DNA from: Corallochytrium limacisporum Hawaii
Lineage: Eukaryota; Protista; Pluriformea
Assembly (NCBI GenBank): GCA_002811645.1
Contig: PDIP01000009.1
Span: forward strand, 1 to 64,000
DNA length: 64,000 nt
Direction of reading: 5' to 3'
The notes beneath the pieces were generated by a model that was not told the origin of the DNA, ran no database searches, and saw only the letters and a program-made list of their open reading frames with translations. Positions 3,001-56,333 of the stretch are shown here, piece after piece. The position numbers and the translations under genes were made by a program. The stretch's first letter is position 1. Every line of letters begins with the position of its first letter.

Positions 3001-4635
3001 AGAAGATGCGATCATGGAAGTGTGAACTGGAGGTCGGAAACGCCGGGACTCTGCATGCAATGTTGTTGTGCCCGTAGCATAGCCTTGCTCAGTTGCCGCT
3101 GTGTTGTGCCATAGTTCGGAGCAACACAACTTCGTGGAGCATAAACAACAATGCGGACTTATCGTCATCGCGTCAAAACTCCCTCCATGGCGGGTCCAGA
3201 AGCAGGACTGACTGCTCGATCTGCTCACTTGGTAAAGAATGCTGAGAGGTGCACTATCAGTCACCGCACTCAAATCGGTATCCAAATACCATAGCATCCA
3301 CAACGCACGGAGGCAGGGTTCAGCGACCAACGCCGCCTCGTTCACTGCCTGAGCGTATCGGCTGGGGATCTAACACCCTTTCTTTATATGGCAGGAAACC
3401 TGTAGGGACTGAAGGCGGAATATTACTCTGACGGGGAAGGCGTGAAGAATGTGTGAAGATTGTCTTCACTCCGTGGGGCAGAATGGAAAGATTTGCCACC
3501 AAATGGAGTAAAACGAAAAATGAAAAGAGGGCGGGAACCTCGGCGAAGTCTGGGATACCGGCATGAGAACAAACATTAGAATGAAGAAGAGGAACCAAGC
3601 CCTTAAGCATCACAAGCAGTCTGGCGGCGGTGGATCGCATTCTCTTGGTGCAAGGCACAAAAAGGACATCTCCGAACTTGGGGACCTATTGTTTTGAAAA
3701 CTTACCGTCCGCAGTAGGCCGAGGACACGACACAAAGCAGGGCTGGTGCTTCACAGTTGCCTCAGTTGTCAGCATCCATGTACGCTTCAAATTGCAAAGG
3801 AGGTCAGCGAATGAAAGCATACGCTGTGGTGAGGCCCCACTGGGTGTCCGAAGAGAGCGGAGCCGGTCATTTTCTGGTTCTAAGAAATCCATCCAGCATC
3901 ATCCTCGTCCTGATGCGATCATCTGCACGTAAAATGACTTGTAAGTTCTTGGGTTCCGTTCGTCGTTGCCGTTCGTCCGGAATGCCGGCTCCTATGTTGT
4001 TATTTCTCTTGTCTTATGTCAAGTCAAATTGTATAAATGAGATGTAGTTTTCGGTGGGCTGTTGATAAAAGATTTAATGATGTGGTGAAACGGACGAACT
4101 CTTTGCAAATAGGGGGGATGTACCTTCGTACCGCCTGGCGCTGCCTCCTTTCCCCCCTCATTCCTCCTTCCCTGCTCTTCGCTGTGTTCCGAATGTTTAG
4201 CCATGTAAGTAAGGCAGCGCGGACCGGTCCGACCCTGAGATCTTCTTGTGTCACTGAACACCTCTCCGTTTGGATATTGAACTAAATTATAAACAGAAAG
4301 ATATCGGATCCTACCCAAACGGCCGCTGAGGCTCATGCCCACGTCCAAGTTGAATATTAGAATTTGTGCAGAGGTGCGGAGTAGGATGCGGCTCTGGGCT
4401 GGTTTCAGTTTCGATTGCAAGCCACTCTGCTTCGCCGAATCATCATACGTGCATCAACGCCAATATCCAGTTTCTATTGTTCGTCCACAGGTACTTAAGT
4501 GGTTTGGTTCCTCGAATCAACTTGGACTCGATCATATGCACATCAAATATCTAAACATAATTTGAGCCCGTGCGCTTTGGTCCAAGGTTCCAGCATATTC
4601 ACTGTTCACCAAAGGTCCCGTAAATAGAAGCAAGT

Positions 4636-6798
4636 ATGGGAAAAAGTGAAGAAGATCAAGTGTCCGAATTCCAGGACACTCCGACTCCCCACGTGACCCA
4701 CGATGACTACCCAGAAATCACCATCCGCGCCATAGTTCTTTCTGCCTTCCTGTCCGTCGTGCTCGGTGCTGCAAATGTCTACCTCGGCTTGCTCGTCGGC
4801 ATGACTGTGTCTGCGTCTATTCCCGCCTCTGTCATCTCGATGGCTTGTCTGCGATTTTTTAAGGACTCTAACATTCTGGAGAACAACATTGTACAGACTG
4901 CCGCATCCGCTGGTGAGGCCATTGCTGCCGGTGTCATTTTCACCTTGCCCGGTCTCGTAATCATGAACAATAAGCGCGATGAAGGCGAGGCAGTGTTCGA
5001 GGGTGTTGAAGGTTGGGACTCCTTCATGGGCTCCAACTACTTTTATACCACCTTCTTGTCCATGTTCGGTGGTCTCCTGGGCATTGCTTGGTCTGTGCCC
5101 CTCCGTCGTGCTCTCATTGTCGACCTCAAGCCTCCGCTGAAGTTCCCTGAGGGGGTCGCAACTGCTCAGGTCCTGAAGTCAGGCGAGGAAGGTGGCGACT
5201 CCGTTAAGGCTGTTGTCGCCGGTGGTGGTATTGGTGCCGGCCTTTCCTTGTTGGAGAGCATGGGCATGTGGAATCCCTCAGTGGACTTTGGCTGGTTCTA
5301 CGAGAACATGCACCCGTCATACTTCTCATTCGAGGTGAAGCCCGCTCTGCTCGGTGTTGGATACATTATCGGTCCCAAGATTGCCTCTGTCCTGTTTCTC
5401 GGTTCAATAGTCAATTTCTGGATCATCATCCCGGTGTCTTCCGCCCTAAATGGACGCTGGAATGAGGATGAATGGGACGTCGACACGATGGGTGAGTTCA
5501 ATGTCGCCAATACTGCCATGACAGAGTTTGGTGACACCAAATACATAGGAGTGGGCATGATGCTTATCGGGGGCGTCTGGTCTCTGATTTCAATTCGTAA
5601 GGCACTGTGGCAGGCAATGACGGCCGGTGTCCAGCAGTTTAAGGCCGCCTTCTCCAAGAAGGGCCGGACTCCCGATTTCACGGACCGAGATGAGTCCATG
5701 CTAGTCGAACGGTACGAGCGCGATCTGCCCTTTACGATTGTGGGGGGCACTATCCTGGCCACCACCGCCATTCTATACGTCATGTTTAGTTTCTTCTCCA
5801 ATGAGTGGGGCTACTGCCTTCCATTGGCCCTGGTGGTTGCTGTCTTGTCCTTCCTGTTCTCTGCAGTGGCCGCTTACATGGCTGGTCTGGTGGGATCGTC
5901 CAACAATCCTGTTTCCGGTGTTGCCATCTGCTCTTCCCTGATTCTATCTGGTCTCATTCTCGCCTTTTTCGGCTCTGACGATCCTCTGGGACCCCCAACA
6001 GCGGTTATGATGTGCAGTGCAGTGGCCTGCGCTTGTGTCATCTCCAGCGATAACATGCAGGATCTGAAGTGCGGTCATCTGCTGGGTGCCACCCCCTGGA
6101 AGCAGGAGATCATCATGGCTGTGGGTGTAATTTCTACCTCCTTCGTAATTGCCCCCATTCTGGAACTGCTAGATCAGGCCTACACCATTGGCGGTCCGGA
6201 CCTGATCGCTCCTCAAGCCACCGTCATTGCTACCATTCCCTCTGGTCTTCTTTCTGGTAGTCTTCAATGGGATTACATTGGCTTCGGCATTGGTCTTGGC
6301 GTTGTGATCATCATGATTGACAAGTTCCTGGAGTACAAGGAATCCTCTTTCCGCCTGCCTGTCCTAGCCTTTGCCATCTCGGCTTACCTACCCATGGGGT
6401 ACCTTTCTCCCATCTTTGTCGGGTCCTTGATCCACTTGTTTGCCCATACTAATCCTGATGATCAGGCGTCTGAGGGTATTCTCTACAGCGCCGGTCTTGT
6501 CGCTGGTGACTCCATCTTCGGGATTCTGCTGGCCGTTCCGGTCATCGTGACTTCCGATGCTGACGTTCTGGAGGTCGTGTCTGATCCCGTGAAGTGGTTC
6601 TGGGTCTTGCCCTTGGCTTTACTCATTGGTACCATGTACCACTTTGCAAAGAACTCACCATTCACTTCACAAAGCCGCGTGGCCTATGAGAGCGAGGTTA
6701 CCCTGATGACGGATGAAACGAAGGCCAAGAGCTTTGATCGGGAGAACAGGGACTCCCTTGACCCCAAGGATAAAGAACTGGGATACTTCCCAAGCTAA
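4636..6798 (+). CDS. OPT/YSL-superfamily oligopeptide or metal-chelate transporter, copy 1 (720 aa)
   Basis: Multi-pass hydrophobic ORF with OPT motifs: ANVYLGL..G.TVSASIPA, NILENNIVQTAASAGE, L.FPEGVATA.VL, GSSNNPVSG, DNMQDLKCGHLLGATPWKQ, APQA. Confidence 0.93.
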   Translation: MGKSEEDQVSEFQDTPTPHVTHDDYPEITIRAIVLSAFLSVVLGAANVYLGLLVGMTVSASIPASVISMACLRFFKDSNILENNIVQTAASAGEAIAAGVIFTLPGLVIMNNKRDEGEAVFEGVEGWDSFMGSNYFYTTFLSMFGGLLGIAWSVPLRRALIVDLKPPLKFPEGVATAQVLKSGEEGGDSVKAVVAGGGIGAGLSLLESMGMWNPSVDFGWFYENMHPSYFSFEVKPALLGVGYIIGPKIASVLFLGSIVNFWIIIPVSSALNGRWNEDEWDVDTMGEFNVANTAMTEFGDTKYIGVGMMLIGGVWSLISIRKALWQAMTAGVQQFKAAFSKKGRTPDFTDRDESMLVERYERDLPFTIVGGTILATTAILYVMFSFFSNEWGYCLPLALVVAVLSFLFSAVAAYMAGLVGSSNNPVSGVAICSSLILSGLILAFFGSDDPLGPPTAVMMCSAVACACVISSDNMQDLKCGHLLGATPWKQEIIMAVGVISTSFVIAPILELLDQAYTIGGPDLIAPQATVIATIPSGLLSGSLQWDYIGFGIGLGVVIIMIDKFLEYKESSFRLPVLAFAISAYLPMGYLSPIFVGSLIHLFAHTNPDDQASEGILYSAGLVAGDSIFGILLAVPVIVTSDADVLEVVSDPVKWFWVLPLALLIGTMYHFAKNSPFTSQSRVAYESEVTLMTDETKAKSFDRENRDSLDPKDKELGYFPS

Positions 6799-11116: not shown

Positions 11117-13064
11117 GAACAAAAACAAGTCCACCCACCATACTCTTAGAATGGGAAGGCTGAGAGGAGTAGGGGAGAGAAATTTCTGACGTCCCCCCCC
11201 CCGGAGTTCCCCGTCTCGTCCTAATTTTTTCTGTTTGCAGCGGAGAGGTGACACTATTTTTATTTTTGGGTTGTTTGCGTATGTGTCATTTTTGTTGGGG
11301 TGGGAAAGTTTATAGTTTTTTAAAAATTCGAAATGGGCTTCGAATACCGCTAGCATGTAGGCAAAAGTCCACATATGGCTTAAAATCCCTACTCCCCTCG
11401 GCTCACTTTCCATTCTGTCGAAAGCCCGGTGGTGTGTGCGGCTGGCTCTCCCTATCTCTCCATTGTGGCCACTGATATACCGCAGAGCGAAGCAATGCAA
11501 AAGATTGAAGACAAGAGAAGGTAGGCGTGGACACACACACACAGAGGACAAGAGAATCCAGCCGCGACGTGGTGGTCCTCAACTACCGGCAAGTCGACAC
11601 TCCGACCTCCGTCTTTACTTGTTTCTCTGGTTTCAGAGTTTTCATCACAGTCACAAGGACCACCGTCGGAGGCATCATCTGACTTAGGGTTGTTGTTCAT
11701 CACGTACTCGAGGTTGGTGTTCTATCCTACTCCGGCTACTGTCATCTTCATTTTGTTAATGTGCTTGCTTCAAAGGCCACGACGGCCAAAGAAAGGACCA
11801 TCCCAACATCCACCTGGATGTCTGAAGAGACCAGGAGCCCGGCCGTTAATCCGGTTTGATGGATCCATCCAGCGTCATACTAGTCCTGATGCGATCATCT
11901 ATGTTTTACTATGCCCTACCAATGTTTGGATTACAATTTTCCTTTCGTTTTTATTTCCTCGTCGTGTTTGCCCTTTCGTCTTCCTATATGAATTTTATAC
12001 ATATGGGGTGGCCACCCAGTGCGTTGTGGTTTGTTTAATGGGTGTAGAAGGTGGGTGGGTGTATTAGTCCCACGTGCCAGAGCATCCGTGTGGAGCTCCA
12101 AGGGGTTTGTCCGCTCTTGATGAGCGCATCGAGAATGCTTAATCCGTCAGCAGCACTCAAACAACTAGTATAGTTCGAGCAGTGTTGAGATTGTTAGAGA
12201 GTCACAGACCATGGCCAGATACCGTGGGTCCGAGTGATTGTACCTGTGTGTCCGGCGCACCCGTGCGTCTGCGTGGAGTGCCCGTGTAAGTTGCGTCTGT
12301 GTTGCGTGTTGTGTGTGACTGTCGGTCTGTGTGGGCGTCTGTCTCTCTATTCTTCGTACTCTGCTTTTCGTCTATGTGGATGCCTGCCAGTAGGGGTGGT
12401 GTCGGGTGTATACGTAAAATGAATGTCTATATGTGATGGTGATGCACCGATAGCTGAATTGGCCGGGGTCGCGCTCCAAACTGTTGAGAGCTTACGAGCT
12501 TCCAGGGACCCTTCCCCCTCCCCCCCCCCTTTGTCCCCTTCCGGTGCCCCTCCCAGACCCTCCCCTGGTGTGTCCACTCAGCCACAAATCTTTAGCCTTT
12601 CCCCCCGCTCACCTTTTCCCCCCGCCCTCTCCTCGGCACAGATCTCCCTCACCGCCTTGTTCTACTTTCGGCCCGTTCGGTACCCAAATGACCTTTGTTC
12701 AACACCTGGAGATCAGCACATTGCGCAAACTATCGCTGAGATTCGGACTTTATGACCAAATTTGAACATTAGATTTGGTAATGGGGTGCATTTTGGGATG
12801 TGACTTTGACTTCCTCTACCAGTTGTTTTGGCAGCAACCCCGCTGTTGCATGATATCCACACGTGTGGAGATGACGATGACCTGTCGCTGATCACCGCCG
12901 GGTATTTAAGTAGATCGGATCCCCCAGGCTTTGCGAGTCAGGTTGAAGCTAATCATTAACCCGCAATTGCAAAACAAGGCGATTATATAAAAAAAAGATT
13001 TGCAACTGGCTTCTGGTCAAAGGTTCTTTCTACTGTTCTTTCAAATCTTTTAAAACAAACAAAT

Positions 13065-15233
13065 ATGGGTCGTCCCGAAGAAAAGGTGGTGACCGAAGTC
13101 GAGGAGACTGAGGTTCCCCACGTCACCCATAATGACTACAAGGAAATCACCCTCCGTGCTATCCTTCTCTCTGCTTTGCTGGCCGTCGTGCTCGGTGCCG
13201 CTAACGTTTACCTCGGTCTGCTCGTCGGTTTGACAGTGTCTGCTTCCATTCCTGCCTCTGTCATTTCCATGGCATGTCTGCGTCTGTTTAAGGACTCTAA
13301 CATCCTGGAGAACAACATTGTACAGACTGCCGCATCCGCTGGTGAGGCTCTCGCCGCTGGTGTTATTTTCACCCTGCCCGGTCTTGTCATCATGAACAAT
13401 GAGCGTGACAATGGCAACCCCGTGTTCGAGGGTGTCGAGGGCTGGGACTCCTTCATGGGCTCCAACTACTTCTACTCCACCTTCCTGGCTATGTTCGGTG
13501 GTCTCCTCGGTATTGCCTGGTCTGTCCCTCTTCGTCGCGCCCTTATCGTTGACCTCAGGCCCCGCCTGAAGTTCCCCGAAGGTGTTGCTACAGCTCAGGT
13601 GCTGAAGTCTGGTGAGCAGGGCGGCAACTCCGTCAAGGCTGTTATCGCTGGTGGCGGTCTGGGTGCTGGTATTTCTCTGCTGGAGAGCATGGGTCTGTGG
13701 TACTCCACTCTTGACTTTGGTTGGTTCTACGAGAACGCTTACCCATCCTACTTCTCCTTCGAGGTCAAGCCTGCTCTGCTCGGTGTTGGTTACATTGTCG
13801 GCCCCAAGATTGCCGGTGTGCTCATGCTCGGTTCCATCATCAACTACTGGGTCATCATTCCTGTCTCTGCTGCCATCAACGGACGCTGGAACGAGGAAGA
13901 CTGGGATGTCGATACCATGGGTGAGTTCAACGTTGCCAACGTGGCTGGTGCCGAGTTTGCCGAGACCCGCTATATTGGTGTGGGTATGATGCTGATCGGT
14001 GGTGTCTGGTCTCTGATTTCCATTCGCAAGGCTCTGGTAACTGGTATCTCTGCCGGTGTCAAGCAGTTCAAGTCCGCCTTCTCCAAGAAGAGCCGCACTC
14101 CTGAGTTCACTGAGCGCGACGAGGACATCCTGGTCCGCCGCTACGAGCGCGACGTGCCCTTCTGGTTGGTCGGTGCTACCATCGTTGCTACTATCATTCC
14201 CCTCTACGTTATGTTCAGTATCTTCTCTGATGAATGGGGCTACTGCATTGTCATGGCCATCTTTGTGGCTGTCGTGTCCTTCCTGTTCTCTGCCGTGGCC
14301 GCTTACATGGCTGGTCTGGTCGGATCTTCCAACAACCCTGTGTCTGGTGTCACCATCTGCTCTTCTCTGATTCTGTCTGGTCTGATCCTCGGTATGTTCG
14401 GCTCTGACAACCCTCTCGGACCCCCCACTGCTGTTATGATGTGCTGCGCTGTTGCTTGCGCCTGCGCCATTTCCGGTGATAACATGCAGGATCTGAAGTG
14501 CGGTCATCTGCTCGGTGCCACCCCCTGGAAGCAGGAGATCATCATGGCTGTCGGTGTCGTTTCCACCTCTTTCGTTATTGCCCCCATTCTGGAACTCCTG
14601 GACGAGGCCTACACTCTTGGTGAGGGTCTGGCTGCTCCCCAGGCTACCGTCATTGCCACCATTCCCTCTGGTATCATTTCCGGCACTCTGCCCTGGACCT
14701 ACATTGGCCTTGGCATTGGTATGGGTGCTCTGATCATCATGCTCGACAAGTACTTGGAGTACAAGCAGGCCTCTTTCCGTCTGCCTGTCCTGGCCTTCGC
14801 CATCTCCACCTACCTGCCCATGGGATACCTTTCTCCCATCTTCCTTGGTTCCTGTGTCCACTACTTGGCTGGCACCGATCCCGAGAACCAGGCCGCTGAG
14901 GGTGTTCTCTACAGCGCCGGTCTTGTCGCAGGCGACTCCATCTTCGGTATTCTGTTGGCCATCCCCGTCATTGTCACTTCCGACGCTGATGTCCTGGAGG
15001 TCGTCTCTGACCCCGTCAACTGGTTCTGGATCCTGCCCCTGGCTGCTCTCATGGGCTCCATGTACCACTTTGCCAAGAATGAGCCGTTCACTTCACAGGA
15101 CCGCCTGAGTACGGCAGAGAGCGAGACTACCCTCATGACCGATGAGAAGAAGGGCCGCAGCTTTGCCCGCGAAGAGATTGAGGGCAGTCTGGTTGACGTT
15201 AAGGATAAGGAACTGGGATACTTCCCCAACTAA
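13065..15233 (+). CDS. OPT/YSL-superfamily transporter, copy 2 (722 aa), tandem paralog of 4636-6798
   Basis: Colinear with copy 1 over its full length, down to the KDKELGYFP C-terminus; same motifs; strong C/T-ending codon bias. Confidence 0.93.
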   Translation: MGRPEEKVVTEVEETEVPHVTHNDYKEITLRAILLSALLAVVLGAANVYLGLLVGLTVSASIPASVISMACLRLFKDSNILENNIVQTAASAGEALAAGVIFTLPGLVIMNNERDNGNPVFEGVEGWDSFMGSNYFYSTFLAMFGGLLGIAWSVPLRRALIVDLRPRLKFPEGVATAQVLKSGEQGGNSVKAVIAGGGLGAGISLLESMGLWYSTLDFGWFYENAYPSYFSFEVKPALLGVGYIVGPKIAGVLMLGSIINYWVIIPVSAAINGRWNEEDWDVDTMGEFNVANVAGAEFAETRYIGVGMMLIGGVWSLISIRKALVTGISAGVKQFKSAFSKKSRTPEFTERDEDILVRRYERDVPFWLVGATIVATIIPLYVMFSIFSDEWGYCIVMAIFVAVVSFLFSAVAAYMAGLVGSSNNPVSGVTICSSLILSGLILGMFGSDNPLGPPTAVMMCCAVACACAISGDNMQDLKCGHLLGATPWKQEIIMAVGVVSTSFVIAPILELLDEAYTLGEGLAAPQATVIATIPSGIISGTLPWTYIGLGIGMGALIIMLDKYLEYKQASFRLPVLAFAISTYLPMGYLSPIFLGSCVHYLAGTDPENQAAEGVLYSAGLVAGDSIFGILLAIPVIVTSDADVLEVVSDPVNWFWILPLAALMGSMYHFAKNEPFTSQDRLSTAESETTLMTDEKKGRSFAREEIEGSLVDVKDKELGYFPN

Positions 15234-50334: not shown

Positions 50335-50670
50335 ATGGCCATTCTTTGTACCTCCCCCTTCCGGAAATGGTTTTGTTTTTGCTTCCGGGTCCTTCCCACC
50401 ACCGTTCCTGGTGAAGGAGAGGGCCCTCTCACCGGCCAAGAGTACACCAAAGCCAAGAAACGGGGCGTTGCGAGGGCATCACAAGGTGTTGTATTGATAC
50501 GACATGAGTTTGACAGGGCTTCTGAATGTTGCATAACGAAATGTGGTAACGTCATGAATGCAACCAATGCATGTTCAGGCCTGAACGTATTTGAAGTCCT
50601 AGATCCGTCGGGACAAGCAACTATCTCACGTGAACAGTATCTAAAGAACTGTTTATTCTAGGATATTTGA
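50335..50670 (+). pseudogene. EF-hand relic resembling EFCAB10
   Basis: NVFEVLDPSGQATISREQYLK followed, after a frameshift, by ELFILG. The upstream part is degenerate or low quality. Confidence 0.33.
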
Positions 50671-50673
50671 AAT

Positions 50674-50952
50674 ATGGCAGGAAAAGGAGCGCGTCTTAGG
50701 GCTGTGAAGCAGGGTAACCGCGCCAAAGCCGGTGGCTCTGGTGCCCAGGTTGGCTTCCGTGATGACAGCTTGGGTCTGGTCGTGTAAGTATTCTTTTGGA
50801 GTCGAGGGACTGACAGGAACCGTTGCTAACTATTGCTAATTGATAATCACTTTCTTCTCATGTACAGTGGACCTCAGGTGGTTCTAATGGGCAGCCTCAT
50901 CTTCATTGGCTCGGTCTTCATGCTGCACATTTGGGGTAAGCTGATCGGATAG
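50674..50952 (+). CDS. SEC61B: Sec61 beta subunit, 2 exons (50674-50783, 50868-50952), 64 aa; absent from the ORF track
   Basis: Spliced product MAGKGARLRAVKQ...[37 protein letters not shown]. The 84-nt intron has GTAAGT, GCTAAC/GCTAAT branch-like sites, a pyrimidine tract and CAG, and contains an in-frame stop. Confidence 0.95.
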
Positions 50953-51719
50953 ATACATCATTATCTTGGGTATGATTCAGTCGTGATAATCTACGAGGGA
51001 AATGCCCAAACAATTGGCATATTTGTGCCCTCTTAGCCATTTCCTCCACACGAGAAAACAAATCGATTAGAAATATATTCAAAAGACGTAAGTATCAAGC
51101 ATACTGGATTTTCTATCCCCCTCACCCCTTCCTTTCATTCTGAGTTGTTTGTATTGATTCGACATTATAATCGTAACGCAGTGATTTGTCCCAGGCCTCA
51201 GAAACTCCGGAGCATCTCAAGGTGCCCGAAGAGGGGAGGAGGGGGCGGGGGCGGCGAGAGTGTTACGTCTGGCGGGCAATCAGCGTAATGCCTAAGAGTC
51301 GAAAGAAGGCCCACAGTGCTTGGGGACCTTCACCGTACACTCACTATGCACGCTATGTCCAACTCTATAGGTAGCCATCCTTATGTGCGCGCAGTGGAGC
51401 AAGAAACTGGGAGGCGTCATTGTACGGAGGCATTTGCATTTCGGTGTGCACGCTGTTGTGCGTGTTCGCTTGCTGGCTGCTTGTGCAGGTCCACAGGTTT
51501 CTGCATGCTTCAGCTAAGCCGTACTATCTTTCACTCTGGTTTTGCTTGCGTAGCGCTTTCGAAGAAACCTCCTGACGACTGTTGTAGTTGAACGCACCAT
51601 CGAATCTACATGTTCATTTCCCCCCGTTCCGGTTGCTCCGTTGCCGTTCGTTACCCCTTACGAATTGAATTTTTTGACCATTTCACCGTCAATGTATTGG
51701 GTATGCGGCGCCGGATCCA

Positions 51720-52747
51720 AGAGTACCCGTCCCCAGCCTTTCCCCGAGAAGAAAATGGCTTCGATGGAGTGTTGGAGAAGGTGCAACATTTGCGTGGGCT
51801 ACTGCAAGAGACATCGTCTTCTCTCAGCAAGCAGGTAGACCTTGGGCTCATTCGCCTTGACTGTGACCCCCTTAACAAGGCAATGGCAGATCAAGTTGCT
51901 GTTTTGTTCAATGAGGCCGTCGAAACTTTAGGAACTCTACTGCACAAGGAAGTTGCGCATCAGTGAAAAGAATATGGCATTCAATGGCGTTCTGATAATG
52001 TGGCCTAGCAGACTTGTGGGCATCATCCACAAGTGTCACGGTATGATGGAGGAAGCTAGGGTTGATGGAGAAGAGTCCTTGCGCACTCGTCGTAAAACAT
52101 TCGGTTCGCTTCAACCGCCTGCATGACTGTATTCATTGACATTCGCAAGGCCACGCAAGGTGTACTCGTCATGAGTGCTTCTCTGGAAGACGTTGCTAAT
52201 AGCATACTCATCGGCAAGGTGCCGAGTTTAATGGATGCGCAAGTCTTTCCCATCTCTGAAACCACTTGGATCCTACGTGTCAGACTTTCAAACCCATCTC
52301 CAGTTCCTTCAGAAGTGCAAGTCTTCTTTATACAGGTTTCTTCTTCACGCAATCATTTCTCACTGGTGTTCTTCAGAATTTCGCACGTAAACAGAAGTCG
52401 CCCAATGAAAAGCCCACTGAAGAACCCGAAGACAGCGCCTACTGCTACGGTTTGTTTTTGGACGGTGCCGGTTGGGATCGCACTAAGAAACCCTCTGTGT
52501 GAGTCGAAACCGAAGATTCTGTTTGACAAGATGCCCATCATTTGGTTCCGTCCAATTCATCAAGTCAAGAATTCGACCGAGGGCAAGCATGAATGCCCTG
52601 TGTACAAGACCTCAGCCCGTCGTGGTGTGTTGAGCACCATCGGTCACTACAAATTTTGTGCTATACATATGGTTGGACTGTGGGAATGCAACAGCTGGAC
52701 ACTGGAGCAAACGAGGCACTGACCTGCTATGCCAGCTTGGTGACTGA
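51720..52747 (+). pseudogene. Axonemal inner-arm dynein heavy chain (DNAH3/7/12 class) pseudogene: tail fragment plus frameshifted C-terminus
   Basis: Across frames: VDLGLIRLDCDPLNKAM; EEARVDG|EESLRT; VRFNRL; DIRKATQGVLVMSASLEDVANSI; [19 protein letters not shown]; [19 protein letters not shown]; YGLFLDGAGWD; ESKPKILFDKMPIIWFRP; CPVYKTSARRGVLSTIGH; TNFV; HWSKRGTDLLCQLGD-stop. It may begin further upstream (~51350). Confidence 0.9.
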
Positions 52748-53139
52748 TGGAGAGACTCCACAGAACGACATACATCACAGTCTTGACCATGAGACAGACG
52801 TGAGGAAATGATAGACAGATGTCATATGATGGCCATGATAAGGTCCATGCTGAATGCGATGTATTCTGTTGTTCTACGTGTGCAAAAGGGATTATGATAC
52901 AAAACTTCCCTTGGACTAGTGTAGTGCTTGATTGGAATGTGAATGGTGTGCTCATAATTCGAAACAGTGCAATGGTGCAGAGTTCGTTGTGTGAAAATTT
53001 CTTGATTGTCATGCAGAGCGTAATAAATGCCCCCATGTGCCCTTGAAAGTGATACTTATGTCATAGTCAGTGTGATATCTCTCGCCCTGAGAGTACTGCA
53101 TGGCACTTTGCCTTTTCTTTACCCAGTTCCGGAGCTCCT

Positions 53140-53970
53140 TTACTTGTCGATGCCCATGTTGAGGAGCATACCTCCGTTGCTGTTACCAGGCAGGTAAGTG
53201 ATGTTGCGGCTCCGCGATAGAACAGCCGCAATGTCCTTAGCGGCATCAATCTTACGCAGCTCAATCAGACCATCACCGCTCTCGACCAGAGCTTTGGAAA
53301 TCATCTCAGCGGCCTGAGAGTCACCCTCTGCGCGAATGATGCTAGCAAGCTTCTCCTGTTCGGCCTTCTCGACAAGGAAGCGCGCACGTTCAGCATCCTG
53401 CTGTGCTACCTGCTTCTGTTCGACGGCAGCAGTGAATTCCCGGCCGAAAGTCAAATGAGTAACCGAAATGTCATCCAGAATAATGTTGAAGGTCTTGGCA
53501 CGGGCGATCAGGGCTTCACGACACTTGCGGGACACCAGCTCACGCTGCGTAATCAGTTCAGCGGCATCAAATTGGGCAACAACTGCTTTCAACACTTCGT
53601 TACCAATGGAGGGCAGGACACGCTCATCGTAGTCAATTCCGAGCGTTTGGTAGATCGTGGGCAAAGCAGTGAGGTAAGGACGGTATAGGATACGTAGAGT
53701 AATCGAAACGTTCTGCAAATCCTTAGAACCAGTGACCGTGTTGATATTGCGCGGGCGGGTCCGGCAGTCGAAAATGATAGGGCGCTGGACACCGGGAATT
53801 AGAAAATGTGTTCCCTCACCGATAACATCGGGGCGGACACCGCGGAAGCGGTCAAAAATGACGGCACGGTGACCACCCTCAACATTGAACAGAGCAGTCT
53901 GCACGACACCACCGACTACGGCCAAGCTTACACCAAGCTTGCCGAGGCTTTCCAGAACTCGAGCAGCCAT
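53140..53970 (-). CDS. PHB1: Prohibitin-1 (276 aa)
   Basis: [72 protein letters not shown]. Confidence 0.98.
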
Positions 53971-55445: not shown

Positions 55446-56333
55446 ATGGGGTTCAAAATTTCCCAAATCTCATGCCTTCATGTAAGGCACAAGAAGTCTA
55501 AAAGGACACTGCACCCTAGCAATGACGGGAATGTAAGACCATTTGAGGCTGAACGGGAGGAGGCTGAGACCAATGCGGCCACTCCGAAGCCAGAAATCAA
55601 GGACCCTGGATTTGCGACGGAGGGCACACCTACTTTAGGAGAACAGAAGAAGACTGGCCAGGACAGTAAGACAGATGGAAAAGTTCCGACTAGACCAGCA
55701 CGAAAGACTCGTGGCGTGATTGACGGGATGGACCCGTCGCTTATGGAGCCGGCAGGCGCAAACCCCAACGTAATTTACAATGTGCCTGAGAACGCACCAC
55801 GTTTACGCAAGCCAGGCAGCATCAATGGCCAAAATGTTGCTATTATGAACTTACCCAAAGGGTCAAGTGCATGCGTTGTAGATTACATTGACTCTGCGTC
55901 CGTCGACGATTGCGTTGATGCCTTTGTGCTCATTGGGCCTACGCGTGGTTCAGTATTTATTCGGGACTGCACTGGGTGCACAGTCATTGCAGTATGTGGG
56001 CAAATGCGCCTGCGAGACTGCAAGAACATGACAGTCTACTTGCATTGCAAGACAGCTCCTGTGGTAGAATCTTCTACCGACATTACTCTCTGTCCAGTCA
56101 AACTCTCCTATGACAAGCTTGATACACAGATGCAATCTGCCGAGCTTGATCGTAGCGAAGACCAGAGCCATGCCGTCTACGACTTCACCCCGCCAGCTGA
56201 TGGAGAGCCAGCCAACTTCGTTTGGAAAGACGAGTTGCCATCCCCAGAGCTGCCTGCTAAGCTTACGGTGCTGCTGAAGCACTATCAATTGAATGTGAAG
56301 CTGGATCGCCTTGTCCGTCACAAGTGGCAGTGA
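55446..56333 (+). CDS. RP2: RP2/XRP2-like TBCC-domain protein, putative ARL3 GAP (295 aa)
   Basis: PGSINGQ, VDDC....LIGPTRGSVFIRDC, CGQMRLRDC (catalytic Arg kept), P.VESS, VYDFTP; N-terminal Gly2 and Cys10. Confidence 0.8.
   Translation: MGFKISQISCLHVRHKKSKRTLHPSNDGNVRPFEAEREEAETNAATPKPEIKDPGFATEGTPTLGEQKKTGQDSKTDGKVPTRPARKTRGVIDGMDPSLMEPAGANPNVIYNVPENAPRLRKPGSINGQNVAIMNLPKGSSACVVDYIDSASVDDCVDAFVLIGPTRGSVFIRDCTGCTVIAVCGQMRLRDCKNMTVYLHCKTAPVVESSTDITLCPVKLSYDKLDTQMQSAELDRSEDQSHAVYDFTPPADGEPANFVWKDELPSPELPAKLTVLLKHYQLNVKLDRLVRHKWQ

Follow-up and report, generated by a model that had tools for sequence, protein, structure and literature searches.

What lies between the genes for Sec61beta and prohibitin PHB1 in Corallochytrium limacisporum? 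In the 64,000-nucleotide stretch of DNA analysed here (positions 1 to 64,000 of contig PDIP01000009.1; hereafter the window), a preliminary description had read about 1 kb between these genes as the last ~230 residues of a DNAH3/7/12-class dynein heavy chain in shifting frames, with at least five frame changes plus small deletions up to the TGA ending at 52747, and had called both neighbours intact. All of this was borne out. As listed in the table, both neighbours are intact, Sec61beta with a spliced intron and PHB1 with its Band_7 domain, and positions 51736-52747 are a dead single-headed inner-arm dynein heavy chain of the DNAH3/7/12 group. The Pfam family Dynein_C matched 52129-52650 in four pieces and three frames (E 2.5e-13, 6.2e-12, 4.7e-4 and 7e-4), and the closest solved structures to the C-terminal part in the PDB were DNAH3, DNAH12 and DNAH7 (E about 5e-11 to 8e-10). 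A frameshift-aware alignment of this part to a DNAH3/7/12 profile gave 118 identities in 224 matched codons; it spanned residues 3748-3994 of a full-length 3994-aa DNAH7-like chytrid protein, which served as the ruler for residue positions, and ended at TGA 52745-52747. Five frameshifts were located 3′ of the join with the tail (near 52134, 52234, 52334, 52491 and 52648), four of them with the same net sign, together with several small deletions, and no in-frame stop was found inside the C-terminal remnant in this alignment. BLAST found the C-terminal domain to be ~50% identical to DNAH3 sequences, and the tree placed it in a mainly opisthokont DNAH3/7/12 group with modest support (80/77); PDB ranking, BLAST and tree thus all put this domain close to DNAH3/7/12. 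The tree does not separate DNAH3, DNAH7 and DNAH12, and DNAH3 gave the top score for the C-terminal part, chytrid DNAH7-like proteins for the tail. Of ~4000 codons, about 315 are left in eight pieces, or about 8% of the gene, and no single open frame of ~4000 codons is present.

Table. Features of the dynein remnant and its neighbours in the window (positions without a prefix), and of ciliary or dynein-like loci elsewhere in the assembly
Feature	Location	Strand	Remarks
Sec61beta, intact left neighbour	50674..50952	+	intron 50784-50867 (84 bp) spliced GT..AG in both RNA runs
Tail piece A	51736..51912	+	about residues 500-560 of the 3994-aa reference; frame ends at TGA 51964-51966; tail profile E 4.3e-5
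First internal deletion site, with frame change	51913..51961	+	about 60-75 tail codons gone; profile positions jump from 269 to 346
Tail piece B	51962..52102	+	about residues 631-678, ending just before the expected linker (DHC_N2) start; tail profile E 1.3e-5
Main deletion junction zone	52070..52104	+	about 3,080 codons (9.2 kb: linker, AAA1-6, stalk, lid) gone; out of frame
C-terminal domain remnant	52104..52747	+	about residues 3760-3994 (~235); five frameshifts; original stop TGA 52745-52747; Pfam Dynein_C, PDB, alignment, tree
ATGA direct repeat; reference without 35 bp kept by the second strain	52405..52408	+	dynein-like residues between two ATGA copies; reference keeps one copy
2-bp deletion private to the reference strain	52645..52648	+	second strain reads the conserved GHSTNF in frame
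Prohibitin PHB1, intact right neighbour, 276 aa	53140..53970	-	Band_7 E 5.5e-30
DNAH5/8-like outer-arm chain, ~200 C-terminal codons, one frameshift	C180:104874-105483	-	
DNAH2-like (inner arm I1) linker scrap, ~115 codons	C261:50910-51308	-	flanked by a RAD51/DMC1-like gene and by a convergent neighbour
DYNC2H1-like C-terminal piece, open 256-aa frame, strongly diverged	C228:5192-5959	-	annotated Clim_evm3s196
IFT57 split by a frameshift	C143:188816-189830	-	first half annotated Clim_evm58s134
IFT46 fragment	C88:255259-255492	+	matches the last 78 profile positions only
GAS8/DRC4, complete 488-aa gene	C233 (L033:811-2274)	+	E 3e-165 to human DRC4; EukProt Clim_evm17s201
IFT140-like open frame, 1240 codons	C25		diverged
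IFT144/WDR19-like open frame, 1858 codons	C177		diverged

The tail was recovered with a profile built from DNAH3/7/12 tails and searched against the 2307 stop-free segments of the window. Two segments scored, tail pieces A and B, and the next best reached E 8. The two pieces are collinear, on the same strand and directly upstream of the C-terminal remnant. Significance was reached only with this purpose-built profile: the tail pieces alone gave nothing significant in the PDB (best dynein match E 1.2) and no dynein family in Pfam, and tblastn with the single 3994-aa reference gave E 0.003 for piece B. A short tail of the single-headed type upstream of the linker is thus represented by two collinear pieces, with ~105 of 740 tail codons left (DHC_N2 begins at residue 742 of the reference); about 490 N-terminal codons were not detectable at the locus either. 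Like the DNAH3/7/12 dyneins (the chytrid "DNAH7" and the single-headed inner arms of Chlamydomonas), the remnant has a matching C-terminal domain and tail, but unlike them it has no linker, AAA ring or stalk. For this gene, the linker, the six AAA modules and the microtubule-binding stalk were absent at the locus, and none was found elsewhere in the assembly.

The preliminary description had let a tail fragment adjoin the C-terminus directly at ~52069. The tail itself stands, as the profile confirmed, but it consists of two pieces in different frames with a second deletion and TGA 51964 between them, and the join is a zone rather than a sharp point. The tail register reaches about 52096-52102 (EESLRTRRK versus a consensus like EELKTRRE), the C-terminal register is unambiguous from 52104 (VRFNRL), and the letters that begin at 52070, when shifted by 2 bases, agree with the C-terminal motif EESMNT as well. 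Because these letters are readable in both registers, the join was placed in the 34-bp zone 52070-52104, and the overlap suggests a deletion that may have been guided by homology. Its size, about 3,080 codons when measured on the domain positions of the reference, agrees with the roughly 3000 codons (linker, AAA ring and stalk) first estimated. The order of tail, C-terminus and native stop at the locus is consistent with decay in place. With neither linker, AAA ring nor stalk, nor an open frame, the remnant makes no motor that could work.

Two DNA runs were assembled separately, and each held the whole 3-kb stretch in one contig (14 kb and 16 kb) identical to the window; both runs come from the assembled source sample, and only the second strain is fully independent. 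Two further runs from 2015 were taken to be RNA-derived because the Sec61beta intron is spliced in them. One of them was identical to the reference and covered 51631-51947 and 52085-52807 without gaps, with a hole at 51948-52084. The other represents a second strain with 19 SNPs, and one contig of it runs unbroken across the join and carries the frameshifts that it shares with the reference. We infer that the two sampled strains are the known strains India and Hawaii. In both strains, RNA-derived contigs thus cover most of the remnant, although contigs give neither level nor strand, and this cover may stem from transcription running on from the neighbours or from carried-over DNA.

Comparison of the two strains indicated that the gene died before they split and that each strain is still breaking it, because the collapse is shared whereas other lesions are private to each. 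The loss at the ATGA at 52405 appears, from its flanking repeat, to be a microhomology-type deletion private to the reference strain, which also carries a private 2-bp deletion (see the table); the second strain has changed G to D and T to I at conserved positions. In the remnant, 14 of 81 near-invariant residues were changed; 20 live orthologues had 0-6 changes each at about 102 such positions (Fisher p 2e-8). Relaxed selection was therefore evident from the changes of near-invariant residues, the strain-private indels and the changes at conserved residues. In simulation, the excess changes corresponded to ~0.06-0.08 neutral substitutions per site, and 1.3-1.7 stops were expected, so that finding none is unremarkable. 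With a divergence between the strains of about 0.7-1.5%, the loss would perhaps be roughly 10-20 times older than the strain split, a rough figure that rests on 14 changes and 19 SNPs. No strain differences were found in PHB1 at 53140-53600. Just downstream of the dynein stop, a 17-bp deletion private to the second strain was observed at 52784-52800.

The searched assembly comprises 24.11 Mb in 286 contigs and holds 83.4% of BUSCO genes, and the genome search scores only the best candidates. Among the scored candidates of the AAA_6, DHC_N1 and DHC_N2 family searches, the sole complete dynein heavy chain was a cytoplasmic dynein-1 of 4905 aa on C184, and AAA_6 and DHC_N1 each had one real match, both in this protein. 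No axonemal motor domain was found in the assembly; the whole motor region of a DNAH7-like protein, used as query, found only the dynein-1 locus. These family and motor-region queries therefore returned no intact DNAH orthologue of the same subfamily elsewhere, which would have reduced the remnant to a dead duplicate. Homology and disabling lesions are both present, as is expected of a unitary pseudogene, and no intact copy was found within the bounds of assembly completeness and candidate scoring. Three further dynein heavy chains are represented by pieces at their own loci (see the table). The DNAH5/8-like piece is much less eroded than the remnant in the window, which hints at a staggered loss, and the DYNC2H1-like piece with its open 256-aa frame may be a small protein that has been retained, not mere debris. 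The possibility that the DNAH2-like linker scrap is a displaced part of the gene in the window was rejected, since it matched DNAH2 with E 2e-16 versus 6e-5 for DNAH12.

Dynein motors of both the outer and the inner arms are required for a motile axoneme, and IFT-B and dynein-2 are generally required to assemble a cilium. Two IFT-B genes, IFT57 and IFT46, were found broken. An intron at the IFT57 break was ruled out, because the only GT..AG noted there spans 13 bases. The radial-spoke-head family gave no match in the genome search, which was run without a positive control. GAS8/DRC4, by comparison, is intact, and either has not yet been hit or is kept for another role. Diverged open frames like IFT140 and IFT144/WDR19 were also present, and no frame of IFT172 length was found in the shared TPR search; IFT-A may thus outlast IFT-B. 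The SAS-6 frame is open, in line with the centrioles seen in Corallochytrium by electron microscopy (PMC11153136).

Taken together, we consider it highly probable that the remnant is a unitary pseudogene of the only detectable DNAH3/7/12-type gene, freed from selection as the lineage stopped building a motile flagellum. In the course of events that we propose, a few large deletions would first have reduced a 12-kb gene between two essential genes to 1 kb; small ones, partly guided by microhomology, would have followed, and one of these (at ATGA 52405) is directly visible between the strains. The loss would be recent enough to be read yet older than the strain split, and the whole flagellum would have been lost while the centrioles were kept. 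The preliminary description had proposed a recent loss or reduction of flagellar motility from this locus; the other broken dynein genes and the broken IFT-B genes support and strengthen that proposal. The intact GAS8/DRC4 and the open, diverged IFT140- and IFT144-like frames are counter-evidence to the loss of the whole flagellum and have to be kept in mind as a caveat.

Could the locus nevertheless encode something that works? It is highly improbable that an intact 12-kb gene is concealed by a collapsed assembly or by sequencing error: although the assembly is short-read and incomplete and the hole in the same-strain RNA lies over part of the join, there is no misassembly at the join, because two DNA runs and the RNA contig of the second strain span it. 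The contigs are continuous across 52000-52150, without a collapsed ~9-10 kb that would hold an intact frame, and sequencing error, which had been judged unlikely from the letters, is indeed so in view of the identical DNA contigs. Repair at the RNA level by editing, splicing or trans-splicing, or at a rare life stage, could draw on the RNA cover in both strains and on the shared net sign of most frameshifts, but we regard it as barely conceivable. No letter differs between the same-strain RNA contigs and the DNA, the Sec61beta intron is the sole gap or joint within these contigs (contigs drop rare variants), and they restore the frame nowhere over 51631-51947 and 52085-52807; moreover, the missing 9 kb was not found elsewhere in the genome, and the lesions differ between the strains. 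Reuse of the remnant as a small new protein or a non-coding RNA is very unlikely as well, even though a 199-aa frame (52123-52722) and a 118-aa frame (51610-51966) are open in the reference and covered by RNA contigs, the latter frame is also open in the second strain, and SNP density is lower in the remnant (0.69%) than in the upstream spacer (1.55%). The 199-aa frame combines different frames and shrinks to 106 aa in the second strain; the 118-aa frame differs between the strains by four amino-acid changes and one silent change; neither exact sequence occurred in the protein collection, and the RNA cover has the other possible sources named above.

It would be a different matter if the remnant were a dead duplicate or one lost paralogue, while a cryptic motile flagellum persisted and its working dyneins were missing from the assembly. 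Such a cryptic flagellate stage of Corallochytrium is predicted in the literature from toolkit genes (PMC7147346; PMC12731214), and the intact GAS8, the open IFT-A frames and the presence of centrioles would suit it. We hold it to be unlikely, since no axonemal motor domain was found anywhere in the assembly and each of the outer-arm, I1 and IFT dyneins survives as a broken scrap at a locus of its own, so that several 13-kb genes would all have to be unassembled while their fossils were kept; the broken IFT57 and IFT46 speak against it too. Furthermore, the public proteome includes protein entries for the dynein-2 scrap and for the first half of the frameshifted IFT57, and a presence/absence screen could therefore count a decaying toolkit as present. 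We thus keep to the reading of the remnant as a unitary pseudogene left by flagellum loss. Within it, a stepwise loss is possible, in which selection maintains GAS8/DRC4, the diverged IFT-A frames and the 256-aa dynein-2 piece for a task other than the flagellum, at the centriole or close to it; we offer this suggestion only tentatively.

The source cited for the cryptic flagellated stage of C. limacisporum is reportedly Torruella et al. 2015. That published view and ours concern the same organism and the same gene set, with toolkit sequences that are detectable and RNA contigs that lie over the remnant. The reading at the nucleotide level differs, in that every ciliary dynein heavy chain that was found is a scrap without a motor, and two genes of IFT-B are broken. 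The dynein and IFT findings thus argue against the published cryptic flagellate stage. Our literature search found no report of flagellar pseudogenes in Corallochytrium. The kind of case is already known from Emiliania huxleyi, in whose strains CCMP1516 and EH2 dynein heavy-chain pseudogene "fossils" have been described and were taken by the authors to mean that the flagellated stage was lost recently (von Dassow et al., ISME J 2015, PMC4438323); new here are the organism and what follows for the claim of a cryptic stage. As in Corallochytrium, the axonemal and IFT dynein loci of E. huxleyi are pseudogenes with large internal deletions, and there is no complete copy (PMC4438323). In E. huxleyi, however, loss varies by strain and other strains keep the genes and the flagella, whereas both sampled strains of Corallochytrium share the collapse. 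Unlike E. huxleyi, Corallochytrium is a holozoan with centrioles that is still cited for a cryptic flagellum, and its remnant has many frameshifts.

Flagellum loss is usually visible only as clean gene absence. Here the intermediate state can be read: kilobase deletions have collapsed the heavy chains, strain-private lesions are still accruing, and part of the axonemal genes have so far been spared. This state points to a loss of the flagellum that was recent and independent, in a lineage whose sister, Syssomonas, is a flagellate. Two questions are thereby opened to test: in what sequence the modules of the cilium decay, and which of the "ciliary" proteins are required by a centriole that carries no cilium. 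Corallochytrium is stably transfectable, and if the kept genes do have a centriolar role, nature would have separated centriolar from ciliary functions in an animal relative that can be transfected.

Some further observations were made in the window. Just upstream of Sec61beta, 50500-50661 (+) matched the C-terminal EF-hand of EFCAB10 weakly (E 0.0016 over 18 residues, below the Pfam cut-off, and with no PDB match), and this stretch could possibly be a second ciliary relic. Two long, similar open frames with near-identical N-termini, both transporter-like, lie at 4624-6795 and 12960-15230 (+); to judge from their likeness, they apparently arose by local duplication. Finally, an open 295-aa frame at 55446-56333 (+) carries an RP2/TBCC-like TBCC domain (E 9e-32).
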